A stretch of 64,000 bases of DNA from NCBI GenBank assembly GCA_964188305.1, contig OZ076898.1. One strand, 5' to 3'. The stretch comes from Podarcis bocagei. Its lineage: Eukaryota. Under the pieces are notes generated by a model, which worked only from the letters and a program-made list of their open reading frames with translations, did no database searches and was not told where the DNA came from. The translations under genes were made by a program, and so were the position numbers. Every line of letters begins with the position of its first letter. Position 1 is the stretch's first letter. Below are positions 14,756 through 64,000 of this stretch, piece by piece.

Positions 14756-16312
14756 ACTGCCCTCTGTAAAGCAAGACACATGGCCATTCTGCATCTCCAA
14801 GCGCTCACATCCCATTTCCCCTTGCCTTCTCCAATGCTTTGGGAAGGAGAAAACTACTGCTGCTTGTTTGTGCTTGGCCGGAGCAGCCCAGAGGAAAACA
14901 CAGCCGGGATGGGGAGGTGTGCTTTGTTGAATCAAGCCAGCTTTTTCTGTTGCAAATGGGGAGGGTGAGAGCGGCAGCTCCGCCCTTGGCAGAGAAGGCA
15001 ATGGGGGGATTAGAGAGACCAGAGGGCTCTCCAGCTGTTCATGGCTGTGACGGCTACAAAGCGAAGGCAGGTGGAAGCGAGATTTGTTATATCATAGGGA
15101 CACATAATTCGGCCTTATGCCGAATTAGACCACTGGTCGCTCTAGCTTAGCATTGTCTACACTGACTGGAAGCAGCTCTCCAGGGTTTCAGGCAAAGGAT
15201 ACTACTGATTAGCTTTTCTGATTGTCTCTGCGTCTTGAGTGCTGACTGCATTTGAACCAGCCCTGACACTAGGGCTTACAGGGCTCTTCCAATAATTCCT
15301 GGCACCCTCTACAAAATGGCGATCTCCTGCTGGTGTGGAAGTGGAGGCCTGTGGGACATTACTGCACTCAAACCAACAATTCATGTTTTGCCAGATAAGT
15401 GCAAGAAGAAGCTGAGGCTCACAGAGCTTTCCTGTAAAATTTGCTAGAGAGAACTCTGTGAGATCACTTCTTTTGCCTGCCTGGGCAAGAAGCTGTAACA
15501 GGACATAATTCCCTCCTGCCAGGGCACCTCTCTTTTTCTTCTACATGCTTCCAAGCCAACTCCACATATGTGTCTGAGCTCTGGAGCTCAGACACCATTT
15601 TGAACTTATATTTTGTATTTTTGTAACATATAGTAGTTATAAACCTGCCTTCATTTTGCTACAGTAACTGCTGCTTCAAAAACTAGATTATGTAAGTAAA
15701 TACTACTTGTACTTCTCCACAAAACAATGTGTGTGCAATTGTTATTTTTAAGGTGGAGAAAAGAGGTAATATCAGGGAAAATCCAGTCTGCCTTAAAGCA
15801 TCCTGGATTATTGTTTCTAGAGGGTTAAATCAACTTTGTCTTAGCTTCCAAATTTAAAGCTGCAAAGGATGGTACTCTGCTGATCTCGCTCACAAGAGCA
15901 AGGATAATAACAAAATAATATATGCCCTCCTTGTGCCTATACCCATACTTCGGAAGTCGTACTGAATCTGTTCCGGAAGTCTGTTCGACTTCTGAAACGT
16001 TCAACTTTCAAAGCACAGCTTCTGATTTGCTGCAGGAAGCTCCTGCAGCAAATCAGAAGCTGCAGAAGCCCCATCAGACGTTTGGCTTCCAAAATAATGT
16101 TCGAAAACTGGAACACTCACTTCCAGTTTCCAGTCATTCAGGAGCTGGAATGTTCAACTCCCAAGGCGTTTGGGAGCCAAGGTACGACTGTACTCCATAT
16201 TTTTAAAGTAGATAGGCATTCAGACAATTCAGACACCCTCCTCCTCCCCATCTCCAAGACCTGCAAGCCAAACTCAGAAGGCCCCATCCCCCATCTCCCA
16301 CTACCTGGGTAC

Positions 16313-18796
16313 CTGCATGTTCTCCCGCAGGTCTGTGGCCTCCCGCAGTGGCTGAGTGGCAGTGCGGAACACCTCGTCAATAGCCTTAATGCCCGTGGCC
16401 TTGGTGGAGGTGTACTCCCGCATGCGCCGGCCCTTGCGTCCCGAGAGCCCCCTCCGGTGCGCTTTGCCTCCGCCTCGCCGGTTGGTGATGGCAACATGGA
16501 CAAACAAGGTGGTGTTGGCGAGGGGCTCACCAGCCAGGGACTGGAGGGGCACATGGCGGTACCCCACCTGGAGGCACTCGAAAGGGATTGTGTACTGCGC
16601 GATGAACTCATCCCCGATGTAGTCGTCATCGAGCACCATGAATCTCAGAATCGCCAGCTCTGGGAGGTTCACCTGGAACTCCAGGGTTTCCTCAAAGACA
16701 GGGTTGTCTCCACTCTGCAGCACCGTCTTGGTGCGTTTCTCGGCACAGTCAGCGGGGATGCCATGCATCTCGGCACAAACGTACGGCTCCACCACGTCAC
16801 CCTTGGCCCCGGAGCCCTTGGGTTTGGGCAGATTCTGGCCACTGATCACCTTGAGGTGCAGGAGCTGGGCCGAGATGCCCGGCAAGGTGTCCCGGGTGTT
16901 TGCGCTGAAGTAGGACACTTCCTCGCGCATGATGGCTGGCCGGAGGACATAGCCGCAGCCCCCGTTCTGGCGGAACCAGCCAGCGTTCAAGTCCATCATG
17001 AGGCCTGGCGTCTGGTAGTTCATGGCCACCATCTGGCAGCCGCACTTCCAGAAGTCCTGGGGGTTCATGTTGCTGGCGTCAATGCGCATGGGGCTAGGGT
17101 AGACCCGGGAGAGGAAGCGCTTGTTGTACTCCACAAAATCCTCCGGTTCTTCATTGGCGTAGCGCCCGGCCTCCACCTCGCTGAAGGAGCAGGTTTCCCA
17201 ATAGCACTGGTTCCGCCGAGAGGCCTCAAAGCCCTGGAAGGACACCGCCTGGCACAGGCTCACCAGGTCCGAGAGCTCGCGGCACAAGGCCCGCCGGCAA
17301 CGCGGCCGCTCTCGGTCCTCCTCGCTGAGAGGCAGGCTGAGCTCCAGGGTCTCCTCATCATCTGACACGTCCCCCTCGCCGGCCTGGCAGCTGGGGAGCA
17401 GCTTCCGGCTCTTGATGAGGATGCAGTTCTTGAGCTTTTCCGGGGAGGGGAGGTAGGACTCGCTGGGGTTCGGAGGCACCAGGTACAGCTTGTCCCCAAA
17501 TGTCTTCCTCAGGTGCTCGGCCACCAGGTGCTGCTGGGCGATGCAGCAACGCACCGAGAGGCACAGGATGAGCGGGAAGTCGGAGGCCTCAAAGGCGTGC
17601 TCGGCAACTGCACCCACCACTCTAGAGAAGGCCAAGCGGGTGCCAGCACCGACTACTGGCTCCCCAGACGAGCCGTCGCAGACCACGAGCTCCAGGCTGC
17701 GGCAGCCGGCCTTGAGCGCCGCCACATAGCCCCCAATGTCCGAAGTGGAGCCGCCCCAGAAGCAGCTGTCCTCGGCCAGGCACGCTCCGTGCGCGGAGCT
17801 AATGAAGTAGTGGGACAACGGCTGGGTCATGTCCTGGCACACCTTGCGGTGCTGGGGGTCGAAGATGTCGCAGTCGGCGGAGAGGAGGTAGCGAGTGAAG
17901 CCGTCAATGGCCAAGTAGCCCCTTTCCCGGCCTTCCTTGGAGGGCTCGTACTTCCGGACGATCTCCAGGCACATCTCCTCTGTCACACCCTCCATGCCCT
18001 GCTCGGCCTCCAAGAAGCTCATGAGGTCCTTCAGGCCCATGTACTCCTTGTTGCTGGAGAACTGGACCAAGAGGAAGAAGACCTCCGGCCTGGTGCACAG
18101 CTCACAGTAGGCCTCCACAAAGACCTCGCAGCCCACCTCCTCCCCGAGTCGCTCACTGGCCGCTTTCTGGAGCTCCTTGAACTTCAGCTCTATGGTGGAC
18201 ATCTTCATGCCAGGGTTGAGGGCCCGGATGAGCTGCACAGCACGGGAAACCGGGATCCGGCCTTCCTTCTCCAGATCCGCAATGTCAAAGACAGAGGCGA
18301 TCCAGGAAGTGCGGGGGTTCGGGTGGCTGGTCTCGGGAGCCCCCTCCAGGGTGTGCTTCCCATAGGAGGCCAAGTACCGCAGCCCCATCACCCAGGCGTT
18401 CACCACGTCGACAGAGCCGGCCACCAGGTCCAGAGACTCGTAGTTGTCCCCGTAGATGATCGAGAAGGCGCATTCATCCGGGAACTGGTCCGAGAGGCCA
18501 TTGGAGCGCAGCACCGGCGTCTTCTTCCCAACTCGCACCTCCTTGACTGACTTGATTTCAATCTTGGCCTTCTCGGAGTCTTTCTTGGAAGGCTCCCAGT
18601 GCATGAAGCGCAAGTCCGGGTCCAGCACAAAGAACCGGCTGTACATGCGGGAGTTGGAGCGCACTTTCTTCATCTCGCAGCCCTCCAGCATGAAGGAGAT
18701 GCAGGCGGCGGTGCTGCTGAGCTTGCGGTTGCTGGGCATGGTGCTGAAGGAGACCGTCTTCTTCTTGTGTTGCAGGGGGCGCTGGCGGGACCCGTC
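16313..18796 (-). CDS. PLCL2-like gene, giant exon 2 (2484 nt): PP1-binding KTVSF, PH, EF-hand, degenerate X/Y catalytic-like and C2 domains
   Basis: Covers the 812-aa ORF 16301-18739, extended to the acceptor ttag|GAC ([25 protein letters not shown]). Ends at DLRENMQ|gt as in PLCL1/2. Long blocks are near-identical to PLCL2 ([13 protein letters not shown]; [14 protein letters not shown]; [12 protein letters not shown]). Confidence 0.96.
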
Positions 18797-41959: not shown

Positions 41960-43200
41960 AGTGAAGCGGGGGCGCTCTCGGCGCGGAGAGGGCAAGGCAA
42001 AGCTGCTGCGTTTGGAATCTCTCCTGGATCCCTAGGTTAGATTTAGAAGGTCATATTAGGACAGAAATGGTGGCACGCGGTGGCGGCGACAGGAGAAAAG
42101 AGGTGATTAGCTGCCGCTGTTATGGGGCTCAGTAAGGATGTCCTTAAGGAGGGGGAGCTGGGAAATCCCTGCGGGGATTCCAGATTAAATTGGGTGGGGG
42201 GAACGAACCTTACACACACGTGCCAAGGGAGTCGGAGGGCGGTACAAGGAGGGTGGAAGTCGAGCGAGCAGCACCCACCTTCATGATGCCGGCGGCGGGG
42301 GCGGTCCTGGCCAGGCCGGGGGGGTCCCTCTCGGCCGAGTTGTCGCGGCTGCTGCAAGCGGAGCCTCCGGAACCGGAGCGCAGCGGACTCAGGTCGCCGG
42401 GGGCTCCTGCGGCTGTAGTGGCGGCGGCTGCAGGTCCTTCTTCTTTTTGCGGGGCGCGGGGGGGCCCGGGCCGGGGCAAGCCCGAGGGGGGACCACCGGG
42501 GGCTCCGTCCGCCATCCCCCCGCGGGGCTCCCAGCAGCCGCACCGGCCCGGCCCAGACGGGGTCCTCAGCTCCTGCCCCAGCGGCGCTTGCACGCCTTTT
42601 GGCGCGCGCCCCTGACCCCCGGCTTGGCAATGCCGGCTCCCCTTTGCCGGGGAAGGAAGGAAGGAGGGATACAGCCAGCGAGCGAGCAGACGCTGCCGCT
42701 GCCGCCGCCGGGGGTGGAGGGTTGGTGGGACGGCTGGGGCGGGGCCAGGCGCAGCACAGCCCCTACCCCAAACCGCGGCGCGGCCCCACGAGCGAGAGAC
42801 CCGCGCAACCGCGCGCCCCGCTGGCTCCTCCTCCCCCGCGCCCCTCCTCCCGCCAAGGCGCTCTTTGGAGCCCCGGAACCTTTTTTTCCTCTTGCCGGCG
42901 CTGCAATCAAAGGAGAGAATTCGCCCCTGCGCGTGCTGCGCTCGGGAGGGCCTGGAGCTCACCCCGGAGGGCTGCTCGGCACCCCCGCCCCCGCCTGTTG
43001 GATCCCGCGGCGGCAGGGTTAATGCAAGGGATGCAAATGCAGGGCTTTTCTCCGTTCACACGTGATTGTTATGGCTTCAGTGCCTGCGTGGATAAGCCTC
43101 CTCGAAGGCGCAGCCCCCCCCCCGCCCCCGAGTTGCCATCAGAACGGGGCTTGGCGGGAAAAGGGCAGCTCCCACTCAGCAGGACCTCGCCACGTTTTCA
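41960..43200. promoter_or_regulatory. CpG island / promoter of the PLCL2-like gene
   Basis: Very GC- and CpG-dense stretch with GC boxes (GGGGCGGGG ~42736, CCCGCCCC ~42983) spanning exon 1. Boundaries are approximate. Confidence 0.85.
42279..42515 (-). CDS. PLCL2-like gene, coding part of exon 1 (79 aa, MADGAPGG...AGIMK)
   Basis: ATG in GGGATGG context inside a CpG island. The Gly/Ala/Pro-rich N-terminus ends in IMK|GTGGGT, phase 0, like PLCL1/2 exon 1 ending in SIIK. It splices in frame to exon 2; the total CDS is 3303 nt (1100 aa). Confidence 0.82.
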
Positions 43201-46200
43201 AAAACGGCTGCATCAACACAGCACACAGTTAAAGCCCACCGTCCAAAGGATCCAGGGAGCTGTAGTTTGCAGAGAGCGTTGGGAATTGTAGCTCTGTGAG
43301 GGGGCAGGCTACAGTTCCCAGGATTCGTTGAGGGCGGGAAATACGCTTTAAATGTATGGTGTGTGCGTGCACTGAAGTATTTAGCACTGTAAGATCCCCT
43401 CACCCAGTGCCATGAAGTCCAGAGCCTAACATTACCTAACTGAATCCAGCCACCCCAACCCATTATGCATTTGACCCTATCTAACCATCAGGTCCTCCTG
43501 GTCACAGGACTGTTACCAAGCGGGCTTTGAGACCCTATTTATATATTATACAGTGGTACCTCAGGTTACATACGCTTCAGGTTACGCTTCAGGTTACAGA
43601 CTCCACTAACCTAGAAATAGTGCTTCAGGTTAAGAACAGAAATTGTGCTCTGGTGGCGCAGCGGCAGCAGAAGGCCCCATTAGCTAAAGTGGTGCTTCAG
43701 GTTAAGAACAGTTTCAGGTTAAGAACGGACCTCCGGAACGAATTAAGTACTTAACCTGAGGTACCACTGTACATCTATCCCACCCTTACTGGATAGCGAA
43801 TGTGCCTGATTTTTCCTTCCCTGTGCTTACCACAACCCTGTGATGTAAATTAGGCTGAGGGTCAAACAAGATGAGATGTGGGAGATCTACGATCGGAATC
43901 CACCATGCTTATTTTTTTATTAAAAAAATATTTACTGCAATAGGTTGTGAATCAGATTAGAATGGTGGTACTGGAGAAAGGTTTATGTGGTTGTTCTTTT
44001 CTTGTACGTTTTTTAATGGCCCTTTCATGCCCCAGAGCAGCTAACTGCCTAATGGCAGAAGATGGGATGGGTACCTTCACTCCCCCCCCCCTTGGGACAA
44101 ATAGCAATTTATTTGGTGGGGGTATTATATTGAGAATATGACAACAGTTGGAGGGTTAAAATATCCCTTTGGGGTTGTCAATGGAGGCCCTTTTGCACTT
44201 GACTCTTCAACCTCAAGTTTGGAAGGTGCCTACAAGGAGAAGCCCTCTTCAGTGGTGGCTCCCTGATAGTGCAGTGCTCTCTCTAGAAAAGCTTGTGAGG
44301 TGCCTTCATTACCCTTTTCAGTGCCAGGCTAATAATTTTCTGTTCTCCAGGCCTTTTTTTAAAAAAAATATACTCACTGCTTTTTCATAGCTGGTTGTTT
44401 TTTGACTGTGGCTGCTACTGAATTTTGTTCCCTGTGCCAAGAAGCGGCATTCAAACAGTGGCACCGTAAGAGCAGGATTTGGGGCAGATGTCCAGCAGAA
44501 TAAACATGAAGCCAACTGGTTTTGCTATATTCTGAAGTAGGTGAAGCAATGCATATCACTCTCTTAAAGGCCTCCTCACCACCACCAGTGAGACCATGGG
44601 TAAGTCCAGCACCCAAATTTACCTAAATGAACCACTGAAACTAAACATAACTATTGATTCTCTCTTACCCTTTTTATACCAATGTGTCCGTGTTTCCATT
44701 CCATCTCCAATCCATCCATTGGGTCAAGCCCAATAAAGAATTCTGTGTGACATGGAAATTTGCTTTCAGGATTTTATGCACTTGTTGATTCTGGAAGTTT
44801 ATTTGTATGTGTGTTGGTGTTATTTTTATAAGCTACATACCATTTCTGGGAAAGACACTCTTTTATAATAACCATTCCAATGTCATAAATCACTTAATTG
44901 TTACCAGAGGGAACAAACTTGGAAATAAATCCAGTTACTAGACCATAAAATGTTAGCAGTCTACTTACTGAGGCATCCTAATGTCAGCCACTTAGAGTGC
45001 ACCAGTGACCTACAAGAAAAAAAGACCATCAACATATTATTTTGTAGTGTGCCAACCCTCCCCCCAACTTCTTATATTGGTTGCCTTGAGATGGCTCTTA
45101 CTTACCACAGGTAACCAGGCAGCCCAGTGTAACAGAGAAAACTCTCTACAAGAATCTAGAGTAGGATAATATTGAGTGTTTGATTGGGGGTGGGAAGACC
45201 TCACTTCAAATCCTTGTCCCGATGTGATGGTTAAAAAAGTTAATCTCTCTCAGCCTAACCTACCTCACTGGGCTGTTGTGATAAATTAAATTAACCCTTC
45301 ATATGCTGCCTAGAGCTCTTTGGAGAAAAGTTGGGGTGACAAATTAATCTTTCAGGCAAGTAGCTTAGAGGTCAAAAGTACATGGCAGAGGCAAGCTCAC
45401 CATGAACCAACTCAAAATAGCTGATTGGGACAAGAGGCCAAATCTGGTGCCATGTTCTTGCCTGCAATTTCATCAAAATGGTGTAAATTTTATTATTTAA
45501 AAAAACCACTCTGGTTCACAGCAAGGGGACATTGTTTCGTTGTCAACATGTTAGAACTCAGCACTGACTCCTAGACTGGATGTCAGAAGCTGCTGTGATC
45601 ATCCCCCAATAACTGCCTCATCTAATCCAGAATGATCCAATTGTTTTCCAGAGCAGCTGGTTCCCAGCAATTTCAGGATGAAAAAATTGCCTGTTGCAGC
45701 TAACACGCCCGCCCCCCGCCCCACTCTGCACCTGGCTTAGAAGGGCTGCTATCCCTGACTCTCCATTGATCATTCAGAGAGCTAGAGCAGCGTTAATGAG
45801 ATCCTGAAGGTTGGGCGCTCTATAATTGGCAGTGCAGCTTTGCAAGGCTCCTGCTACCCAGACCAGCACTCGTGAAAGATGCTGGCCTTAGTAGTGGGGT
45901 AGCAATTAGTGTGGAGCAGAAGGAACCCCCTACCTGGCCCTGCTGAGCACCAGCTGCTGGCATCAAAGCACGAAGGCCAGCGTCTACTTGCATGTCCATG
46001 CAGAAAAGGGCAGAGGATGGGATGATATTGTTGGTAGGGAAGAGATTATTGCCCATTTTCCATATTGTTTTCTGGTCCCCATTTATTGAGCAGAGGGAAG
46101 GGATGTTGGTATGGAAATTAATGAAGTTCCTGGTAGTCTTTTCAAGAAAAAGTTTCCTTTGCAGAAAGACTTTGTCTTTTTAAAGGTTTATGCAATAAAA

Positions 46201-55742: not shown

Positions 55743-55869
55743 TCATGACTGGGCGTGCGAAATCCACTGGCTGTCCATGGGGCGCCTCAGCAGCTCTTCC
55801 ACATGCCGCGCCACGTCCATCGAGTCATCTAGGTCATAGTCCGCTTCTGGGTCCAGCACGGAGTCGGGG
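55743..55869 (-). CDS. STAT5B: STAT5 last coding exon (127 nt to stop)
   Basis: cag|(N)[41 protein letters not shown]; the STAT5B-type C-terminus. Confidence 0.93.
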
Positions 55870-56574: not shown

Positions 56575-56682
56575 TTTGTTGGATAAGTGTTGTACAGGGA
56601 CTGATGGCAGACAGCTGGGGAGGAAGCTTGATCCATGTAGGTAGGTCCTCCAGCTGTAGAGTCTCCAGATGTAGTGGCAAAC
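56575..56682 (-). CDS. STAT5B: STAT5 exon (108 nt, transactivation region)
   Basis: cag|G FATTSGDSTAGGPTYMDQASSPAVCHQSLYNTYPT AA|gtaagt; same size as recalled human exon 18. Confidence 0.9.
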
Positions 56683-57719: not shown

Positions 57720-57771
57720 TCTGGCACAACTTGCTTGATCAGCGGCTTCACATACCCATCCCCTGTCTTTG
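57720..57771 (-). CDS. STAT5B: STAT5 phosphotyrosine-tail exon (52 nt)
   Basis: cag|CA KTGDGYVKPLIKQVVP GA|gtgagt; contains the Y694/Y699-equivalent GYVKP. Confidence 0.9.
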
Positions 57772-58986: not shown

Positions 58987-59142
58987 AAAGGACTGGCATG
59001 TAGTATTTGGAGAAGACCTCTTCCTTGGGACGGTCAGGATACACATAGAGGAGGTATGGGAGGTCCCCAAGACGGTCTGCCAGGGTGCGGATGGAGAAGT
59101 CACGAGTGGTGAAGGGCATCAGGTTCCAGAACATTCTATCAG
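58987..59142 (-). CDS. STAT5B: STAT5 SH2 C-terminal exon (156 nt)
   Basis: cag|[54 protein letters not shown]|gtaggt; the donor is inferred from phase compatibility with the next exon. Confidence 0.88.
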
Positions 59143-60321: not shown

Positions 60322-60582
<261 letters not shown>

Positions 60583-60757: not shown

Positions 60758-62433
60758 CTGGTTAAAGAGAAAGAAAGATCAACATTCCTGCCTGTTTCTC
60801 AGTCACCCTGGGGTCTTGTAAAACAGCTGGAAGCTTTTTAGGTTTCCTTGGATCCTAAACTAATGGTTTACATAAAGTAAAGTAAATCCTTATCCAAATA
60901 AGGCTTGCCACTATCACAAGTTATGGGGAGAACTAGCCATCAGTTGAGAGACACTTTTGTCTTTGGTATGTGCCTTGATGATGACCAGCTGTCACTATAG
61001 CACTTCTTGTCAAAAGACAATGCAATCTCAACTCATTTTTTCACCCAAAAGGTTCTCATGAGCTCCTTTCACTGATTAGGGACAGAGAAAGAATGACTTG
61101 CCCTGTGTTACCAAGGGAACCCAAGGCTGAGCAGGATTCATTTGGACCAAACTTGTTTTTTTTGGTGTGTTTTTTTAAAAAAAAATATTTATTTTATTAA
61201 TTGCCTTCTAAACTACCATCTCAAGTCAAGTCAGTTTACACACAGAACAAGAGAGGAAACATCCTGGTGTGGCCCAGAGAATGTCCTAAAGACTTCTGAC
61301 CAGGATCCAGGATCAGAAGTCCCCAAAAACCTTTGGTACGCTTTATGTGTGTGCACAGAAAACCCTACCTACATATATGCCTAGAGTGAATTGTGGAACC
61401 TGTATAAAGATACCACAATGTGTATTTGTTAATAAGCTGGTTCAAAGTAAAGCAGTTAGATGGATTGAAGTTTCTTTAATAAACCGACGGCCTAGTTTTA
61501 TACAATCCTTTCCCAAACTGGTGCCTTCTTGGATGTTTTAGACGACCACTCCCATCATTCCCAGACTGAGGAAAGTTGCTTGACACAAATGCCAGTACAG
61601 TGGTACCACTACTTACGAATGCAATCTGTTTCGGGGTGCTGTTTAAACCCCAAAAATCTGTGAGCACCGCTACTGCGCATGCGCAAAGGGTGCACATAGC
61701 TTCTGCACATGCGGCGTACCTGGAAGTAAACACTTCTGGGTTTGCTGCGTTCGTAACCTGAAAAGCCACAACGTGAAGCAAACGTAACATGAGGTATGAC
61801 TGTAAATGAATATTGGCACAGGCCAATATGTCACGTAGGGTTCACGTAGAGAGATGTGTTCTTTCCAATTCTCCCTTACTGATTGGATCGCAAAACTGGC
61901 CGCCCCTAACAAGGCTGGCCCTAAATGGTACTGTTGCCAACCCAAGCTTTCCTTTCTCCTGCACCAGAATGATGTGTTTCAGACAGCAGGGAGGGGAAGA
62001 AGTGAGAAAAAGAGGCATAGATATGGAATGAAATATAAGTCCAGGTGGGGTGGGGTGAGCTGCGGTGATGGGAGAAGGCCTATAGGCCATGGTACCTTGC
62101 GCCCTATCCTCAAAAAGGTTATCCAGCAAGTTTCGTTACTAACCAATTCCCAACTACAGTCATACCTTGGTTGTCGAACGCCTTGGAACCTGTATGTTTT
62201 GGCTCCTGAATGCTACAACCCCGGAAGTGATGGTTCCAGTTTGCGAACGTTCTTTTGGAACCTGAACCTCTGACGGGGCTTCCGCAGCTTCTGATTGGCT
62301 GCAGGAGCTTCCTGCAGCCAATCAGAAGCTGCGATTTGGTTTTTGAACCTTTTAGAAGTCGAACGGACTTCTAGAATGGATTCTGTTCGACTCCCAAGGT
62401 ATGACTGTAGAGCACACACTCACACACCCTTAC

Positions 62434-62856
62434 CCTGTTGAACTGGGCCCAGGAAACAGCCATGCTGTTGTAGTCTTCTAAGAGGTTCATGTTGCTATTA
62501 AACAGTTTCTGGGCCAAGAAGAGCAGGTTTTCCTTGGTGAGACCTCGGCTGCTCTGGACCTCCGATTTGAACTTCATGTTGAGGGCCTCGCACAGCTGCG
62601 ACCACATCACCTTGTCGGGCACGGCGAAGGGCACACGGCCCGGCTCTGCAAAAGCGTTGTCCCACAGCACCGTGGCCGTGGCGTTGTTGTCCTGGCTGCC
62701 GTGCACAATCACCACCACAGGCAGGGACAGCGTCTTCACCTGGAAGACCAACTCGTTGCCGCCAACGCTGAACTGGGATTCAAAGAGGATGGTGAACTTC
62801 TCCTCGGTCACTGACTCGGCGCCGCGTCGGTCAGAGCGCTTGATCCGCTTCAAGGA
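62434..62856 (-). CDS. STAT5B: STAT5 DNA-binding/linker exon (423 nt); upstream exons lie beyond the window
   Basis: cag|[21 protein letters not shown]...[37 protein letters not shown]...WAQFNR|gtaagg. Confidence 0.95.
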
Positions 62857-64000
62857 CTGTGGAGAGGTGCCGTGGGAGAGGCAAGCACAGCAGCGGGGGG
62901 AGGCGGAGAAAAACAGAGCACAGCCTGTCAAGGCCCTAGAAGTGATAGCCATCGCTTGCAGATAGTGGTAGGAGAAAGCTATGCCATATATTAAGGCATA
63001 TTTGTGGAGGGAAATACACACAGCGTATTTTGGTCTACCTGGAGAGCTTCAGATGCAGATTTTGGCATTTTTAACAAAGCTCGTCACACTAGAAGTGGGA
63101 ATTGGATGGGGCCACTTTATAACACTGGCAAAAGGCCTGAAAACCAGAGAGCAGGGACAGGGAGGACAGGTACAAGGGAGTCCCCCCATTCAAGGCTCCA
63201 TCTTGGCCCTGGCTTTTGGCTCCATATATGGCTCATTTTTCCTCTCTCAGAATCAGGAGGATTAATAACAGACCCTTGGTAGGAAAAATAAAAGCGGGCT
63301 GGGTGGGAATCAGTGCAGGCATCTTTGTCTTACCATGTTACGGAAATGAGCGCTCAGAGTACCAGTCGCCTGGTGATATTCCATCACACAGCAGTTGTTC
63401 AAGATATCGCCGCTGCTCTCACTGCCAAAATAAACCAACGGTAGTTAGCAGAATATAAGCCAGTGCACCACAGGCAGTTTAATATCTTCCCATCTACATT
63501 TCTGCACGAGGACGACCCTGCTGACATAGCTTTTCATTGCTTCAACAAAAATCTTGATCTATTTATTTTTTAACATTAGGTTAAATTTTACAAACGAATG
63601 CATGCAAACGTACACATGTATTCTGAACGGGCTTAAATGGAATTGTCACTTTTTGCCTTGTGACCTTTCATTGCCAGCCTTGGGGGAAGGCTGCTGCCAT
63701 GCCACAAAAAAGTTTGCCAGCATGTCAGATTCCAAGAAGAAAGCCTTTTGCAACACAATGGTAGAGGATGTGAAAAGTCTGCTTGATTGAAAGAAAAACA
63801 ACACATAAGAGCCCAAGAGCCATGATAGCAGCAAGGGAGCAGGCAGGAAAGGAAGCTTCTAAAGTTCTATGGACTGAGGGGTAGGATGAATTTCACACAC
63901 TGGCCAAGATTTACATCTCTTAGTTCCTGAACACCTTGCACAGGTGTGAGACACCTTTTTTTCAGCCCAGGGGCAATATTTCCTTCTGGGCAACGTTCTG

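Follow-up and report, generated by a model that had tools for sequence, protein, structure and literature searches.

Does the 423-nt internal exon of STAT5 in the lacertid lizard Podarcis bocagei represent three ancestral vertebrate exons fused by the exact loss of two adjacent introns and, if so, how old is this loss and by which route did it occur? We addressed these questions from a window of 64,000 nucleotides, meaning the whole stretch of DNA analysed (contig OZ076898.1, assembly GCA_964188305.1), with intron and exon numbers following human STAT5B. Read on the minus strand from 62856 to 62434, the exon formed a single open block of 423 nt, stop-free and in phase 0 at both ends. It was flanked by an acceptor AG at 62858-62857 (ccacag) and by a donor, GTAAGG, starting from 62433. 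Both former junctions were seamless, reading GTG AAG / ACG at 62734/62733 (FQVK/TLSLP) and GAG CCG / GGC at 62641/62640 (AFAEP/GRVPF). The fused exon and its three parts are given below, alongside their counterparts in a compact bird-like STAT5 locus (L012) and in a turtle (L002 and L003).

62434..62856, minus strand: fused STAT5 exon, 423 nt, 141 codons (SLKRIKR to QFNR); evidence from Pfam, STAT5B alignment, DNA contigs and RNA-seq
62734..62856, minus strand: counterpart of ancestral exon 11, 123 nt; tblastx against bird-like L012 10316-10438; turtle L003 764-886, with GT next
62641..62733, minus strand: counterpart of ancestral exon 12, 93 nt; L012 10583-10675; turtle L003 1397-1489 and L002 159-251, with AG/GT flanks
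62434..62640, minus strand: counterpart of ancestral exon 13, 207 nt; L012 10789-10995; turtle L002 818-1024; 55 ORFs with an acceptor-like Q before GRVPF

The product of the fused exon takes in the last part of the STAT DNA-binding domain and the first part of the linker domain, with Pfam matches to STAT_bind (E 3e-15) and STAT_linker (E 8e-20). Against the solved structure of STAT5B (6mbw), 141/141 residues aligned with no gaps (E 1e-80), and the alignments to STAT5A and to the outgroup exons were likewise gap-free. Similarity to other family members was graded, with E values of ~1e-80 for STAT5B/5A, 1e-49 for STAT6 and 1e-12 for STAT1/3. Judged from these matches, the 423-nt block is identifiable, well beyond chance, as a STAT5 coding exon. 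The first-pass annotation had described one uninterrupted exon of 423 nt from SLKRIKR to QFNR, with seamless junctions at VFQVK/TLSLP and AFAEP/GRVPF. The former was borne out by the minus-strand reading, the AG/GT flanks and independent contigs (see below), and the latter by the gap-free alignment to STAT5B. For the 3′ end of the exon, we take codon 560 of STAT5B to be the end of QFNR. If QFNR does end codon 560, this end coincides with the human exon 13/intron 13 junction, c.1680, as named in the title of Hwa 2007 (cited in PMC9899847 and PMC3356141).

The remaining exons were found by tblastx against the bird-like locus, and their ends were set by splice sites. The N-terminal half of STAT5 falls past the end of the window. 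Together with the two introns that flank the fused exon, the rest of the gene was as follows.

63334..63421, minus strand: exon 10, 88 nt; same size in the turtle and the bird-like locus
62857..63333, minus strand: intron 10, retained, 477 nt, GT...AG; splice sites, RNA depth zero in 62861-63288
60758..62433, minus strand: intron 13, retained, 1676 nt, with high-copy repeats inside; splice sites and contig depth
60663..60757, minus strand: exon 14, 95 nt; tblastx, bird-like L012 11315-11409 also 95 nt
60426..60556, minus strand: exon 15, 131 nt, start of SH2; tblastx, L012 11476-11606 also 131 nt
58987..59142, minus strand: exon 16, 156 nt; tblastx and splice sites
57720..57771, minus strand: exon 17, 52 nt; tblastx and splice sites
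56575..56682, minus strand: exon 18, 108 nt; tblastx and splice sites
55743..55869, minus strand: last exon, coding part 127 nt, ending ...HAQS stop; tblastx and splice sites

Exons 14-19, encoding SH2 and the C-terminal transactivation region, lie in the same orientation as the fused exon and their sizes matched those of the bird-like STAT5 locus. All of the exon sizes listed previously for this gene (95, 131, 52, 108 and 127 nt) were recovered, plus the unlisted 156-nt exon and the 88-nt exon 10. A separate observation concerns exon 16 (58987-59142), which in the lizard is the short 156-nt form, ending ...PVL and continuing with S-KTGDGY over the junction. The corresponding region of the bird-like locus (L012 11865-12035) offers two donors, one for the 156-nt form and another 15 nt beyond it, the latter of which would add a CESTP-type insert as in mammalian STAT5B.

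Independent DNA data were in agreement with the assembly. Short-read Logan contigs of three closely related lizards, taken from three studies, cover the window from 62380 to 63600, 63030 and 62988, differing from the window by 3-5 substitutions each, with zero gaps and at single-copy-like depth. A separate Logan contig (L001, ERR14042333) shared 98.8% identity with the window over 1189 nt. The contigs of the three lizards and L001 cross the exon without introns. Stranded RNA-seq of one of these lizards gave 9-15x depth over 62433-62860 (four bins), on one strand only. Depth was zero in 62861-63288 (intron 10) and 60828-61683 (intron 13), and exons 10, 14 and 15 were covered, so that the use of exon boundaries is read from this depth pattern and not from splice joints. 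These data confirmed that the fused exon is genomic, not an assembly fault, and that it is transcribed and used as one block. All RNA reads of this lizard also displayed A>G differences at 62500, 62650 and 62833. RNA editing was rejected at these sites, as the same changes are present in that lizard's DNA contig and represent differences between close lizard species.

The ancestral state of this region was apparent from the outgroups. In the turtle Terrapene carolina triunguis (GCA_002925995.2), the same codons are divided among exons of 123 + 93 + 207 nt with AG/GT flanks, intron 11 being about 510 nt long and intron 12 about 566 nt. The bird-like locus (L012; Logan ERR14244249) owes this name to a gene that is compact and GC-rich, to the GH3-domain gene lying downstream and to a tree position beside the turtle. 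Here the exons measure 123, 93 and 207 nt and the introns between them 144 and 113 nt; exons 10, 14 and 15 are equal in size to those of the lizard. All four of the turtle and bird-like boundaries are in phase 0 and fall at FQVK/TLSLP and AFAEP/GRVPF, with the flanking codons as in the lizard. The proposal that three ancestral exons were fused by the exact loss of two adjacent introns therefore held, in that both outgroups have 123 + 93 + 207 nt at the very junctions that are seamless in the window.

A word search with the fused exon extended this comparison: many fish- and mammal-like ORFs run on into introns at these two junctions, since the underlying gene calls do not splice. At junction 1, eight ORFs go on after FQVK with a donor-like V (GT...) and 21 have an acceptor-like Q before TLSLP. 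At junction 2, VS or VT follows AFAEP in 24 ORFs, and Q precedes GRVPF in 55. The in-frame read-through lengths were 144-171 nt for intron 11 and 75-153 nt for intron 12, in a sample biased to short, stop-free introns. For mammals, this evidence consists of the protein strings of ORFs (P0037/38, P0039 and others). The first-pass annotation had allowed that outgroups might also be without these introns; turtle, bird-like, fish-like and mammal-like genes were all found to have both. Because these genes keep both phase-0 introns, the comparison shows that the ancestral amniote, and the ancestral bony vertebrate, had introns 11 and 12, and that the lizard state is a derived loss.

Two further groups of ORFs recovered in this search were of a different structure. 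In the mammal STAT5A-like ORFs P0032 and P0033, exons 10, 11 and 12 are joined and then followed by intron 12 (AFAEP continuing into VSPRG), and these are most likely RNA-derived contigs retaining the short intron 12. In STAT5-like ORFs P0005-P0012, P0002 and P0003 (61-68% identity to the query exon, probably invertebrate), these codons and part of SH2 lie in one ORF, on contigs of up to 52 kb. Outside vertebrates these introns are thus absent, either independently or primitively.

Overall, the window gene was shown to be the ordinary, expressed STAT5 of a lacertid lizard, with introns 11 and 12 missing exactly to the base. The protein sequence is unaltered by the loss, whose sole structural effect is a constitutive internal exon of 423 nt, evidently spliced normally.

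We further investigated the occurrence of the fusion among squamates. The 90% cluster of the window's ORF contains four other ORFs, differing in flanking intron read-through. The contigs of the cluster ORFs (L004-L011) have the same uninterrupted 141 codons with AG/GT flanks, sharing 84-88% identity with the window over the exon, and their introns are not alignable to it. Two of these contigs come from sources described in the literature: L008 from SRR32478114, a genome skim of muscle DNA of the viper Macrovipera lebetinus (PMC12377087), and L011 from SRR31508491, a PacBio HiFi genomic data set from the skink Prasinohaema aff. flavipes (PMC12400806). Wherever a squamate contig reaches far enough (Macrovipera L008, Prasinohaema L011 and L004-7), the separate 88-nt exon 10 sits 318-494 nt upstream. 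L009/10 carry the AG/GT-flanked fused exon, and exon 10 was not found on those contigs. In a small exon tree, for which the three outgroup exons were set side by side as alignment columns, L009 grouped with the skink (95% support) and L004 was unplaced. L009 and L010 also share about 130 nt of alignable intron with the skink.

No one-intron intermediate occurred among the sampled squamates, which comprised lacertid, skink, viper and two more lineages; one may exist among geckos, dibamids or tuatara. An intron-bearing lepidosaur ORF was also sought with the exon-13 part alone; this word search, a weak one covering ORFs of 0.55-1.75x the query length in that collection, returned nothing of >86% identity. 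The loss is common to lacertid, skink, viper and two more squamate lineages, and its distribution therefore places it before the split of skink versus lacertid plus snake. Published timetrees date this split to roughly 180-200 million years ago. The suggestion that the fusion could serve as a phylogenetic marker within squamates was undercut by this result, as the fusion is invariant across these lineages. It could discriminate only at the very base, that is, among geckos, dibamids and tuatara.

Not all readings of the locus involve a squamate loss. In one, the single exon would be the original condition and the introns would be gains of other vertebrates, for which it can be said that some invertebrate-like STAT5 homologues (P0005 and relatives) have these codons in one ORF on long contigs. 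However, this would need identical parallel gains in fish-like, turtle, bird-like and mammal-like lineages, matching in both codon boundary and phase, and we regard it as exceedingly improbable. An artefact or a non-working gene, whether through cDNA contamination, assembly collapse or a partly processed paralogue beside an intron-bearing STAT5, is very improbable as well. Introns 10 and 13 remain, each with proper splice sites, the exon is crossed at single-copy-like depth by the contigs of three lizards and by L001, the HiFi skink and genome-skim viper contigs share the structure, and the exon is used in RNA-seq. Against a paralogue in particular, the search with exon 13 only found no lepidosaur-like intron-bearing ORF in the collection covered. 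A processed retrocopy or retrogene was rejected, as introns 10 and 13 to 18 are all in place, beginning with GT and ending with AG. Taken with the independent contigs, the RNA data and the survival of the introns on either side, the distribution among outgroups leaves no practical room for a retrocopy, an artefact of assembly or a gain of the introns in other lineages.

As to the route of the loss, we regard a single event as the probable cause of the removal of both introns, namely repair or conversion with a spliced STAT5 transcript as template. Such an event would date to an early squamate (or lepidosaur) and would have affected its germ line. The transcript would have acted either as RNA itself or after being copied into cDNA by the reverse transcriptase of a retrotransposon. 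A short tract of the gene would then have been rewritten by gene conversion or homologous repair. To span exon 12 with both junctions, this tract would have needed about 95 nt or more; with an upper limit of 423 nt, it would have left introns 10 and 13 untouched. The fused exon would subsequently have been fixed as a neutral or nearly neutral change. In favour of one event are the exact junctions without any indel, the adjacency of the lost introns and the survival of introns 10 and 13. Concerted loss of adjacent introns is the pattern attributed to transcript-templated loss (PMC2614967), and introns 11 and 12 were both gone in every squamate of our sample of lacertid, skink, viper and two more lineages. 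The first-pass annotation had read the fusion as recombination with a reverse-transcribed mRNA, a plausible reading that the adjacent loss fits, but no trace of the mechanism survives in the sequence. The model also calls for germ-line expression and a source of reverse transcriptase when the loss occurred; what the RNA-seq shows is expression in the present day. The classical cDNA model favours a bias towards the 3′ end, which is typical and not obligatory. In STAT5 the loss is mid-gene (introns 11-12 of about 18), with six downstream introns (13 to 18) kept. Also pointing away from one event are the shortness of both introns in many vertebrates (75-171 nt in the read-through ORFs, 113-144 nt in the bird-like locus) and the AG...AG and G...G microhomology at the outgroup junctions. 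Short introns are the easiest to lose by simple genomic deletion.

The serious rival is accordingly a pair of independent, exact genomic deletions, microhomology-mediated or by end-joining, that removed the short introns in succession and without any RNA template, the squamate-wide loss being equally real. The introns concerned are short (144/113 nt in the bird-like locus, 144-171/75-153 nt in the read-through ORFs for introns 11/12), the outgroup junctions offer 1-2 nt of microhomology (AAG/gt...cag/A and CCC/g...cag/G), and microhomology-mediated intron loss appears among the cases documented in other animals in PMC3698931. Yet any splice junction of the AG/G type offers 1-2 nt of microhomology. 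Each deletion would also have to be base-exact and to fall in neighbouring introns of one gene, with introns 10 and 13 kept, whilst the expected one-intron intermediate is in no sampled squamate. We consider two successive exact deletions possible, if rather unlikely.

Coulombe-Huntington and Majewski (2007, Genome Res 17:23) reportedly catalogued precise intron losses in mammals. The squamate case resembles that catalogue, and the concerted-loss pattern (PMC2614967), in its exact removal, unchanged coding, introns that are short in relatives, joint loss of neighbours and a broadly expressed gene. It differs from the mammalian catalogue in the squamate lineage, the STAT5 gene and the mid-gene rather than 3′-biased position. 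Within the STAT family, Ag-STATa of Anopheles is a single-exon STAT retrogene (PMC3670131), and here too the missing introns are attributed to reverse-transcribed mRNA. Unlike Ag-STATa, a full retrocopy at a new locus with all introns gone, the lizard STAT5 is at its original locus and has lost two internal introns, with the others in the window (10 and 13 to 18) kept. A published description of STAT5 intron loss, or of this squamate event, was not found in a literature search, and on intron loss a STAT-family review cites only the mosquito single-exon retrogene (PMC3670131). The squamate STAT5 double loss is an instance of a familiar kind of intron loss, and one implicit in any correct squamate annotation.

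In this highly conserved signalling gene, the fusion is an old trait that squamates share, and it provides a presence/absence test for the deepest lepidosaur branches. Should some lineage keep one intron, or none do so, this would constitute a natural experiment on one transcript-templated event versus two deletions. The protein is unaffected, and the finding is of value for the evolutionary record and not as new biology. Amniotes seldom lose introns exactly and, because of this rarity, each such loss is a low-homoplasy character. A broader and speculative reading, which we think improbable, is that the STAT5 loss is one case of a wider, undescribed excess of transcript-templated intron losses in squamates, tied to their diverse active non-LTR retrotransposons. 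As part of that reading, the loss would also be a once-only rare genomic change on the squamate/lepidosaur stem, able to test the placement of geckos, dibamids and tuatara.

Several further features of the window were recorded. Intron 13 contains a MITE-like element at 62154-62410 (257 nt), 24 nt downstream of the fused-exon donor. Its terminal inverted repeats are 26 nt long and 92% complementary, and a perfect palindrome of 24 nt lies inside it at 62283-62333. Summed contig depth over this element rose to 10^5, which marks it as a family with very many copies in these lizards. RNA reads mapped to it on both strands. A second high-copy repeat, at 61684-61897, reached 10^4 in summed contig depth in each of the three DNA runs; one inverted-repeat arm (61792-61816) matches the element terminus at 62143-62167.

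Away from STAT5, a GC-rich island at 42000-43300 (59% GC) contains overlapping ORFs of 190-250 aa on both strands, for which no Pfam match was found; a CpG island or an adjacent gene's first exon may account for it. GHDC, the next gene after STAT5 in the bird-like locus, had no match anywhere in the window. Finally, the minus strand at 16301-18739 carries an uninterrupted ORF of 812 aa (61% GC) with a complete PLC-delta-type set of PH, EF-hand-like, X, Y and C2 regions, which looks like an intronless PLC-like gene.
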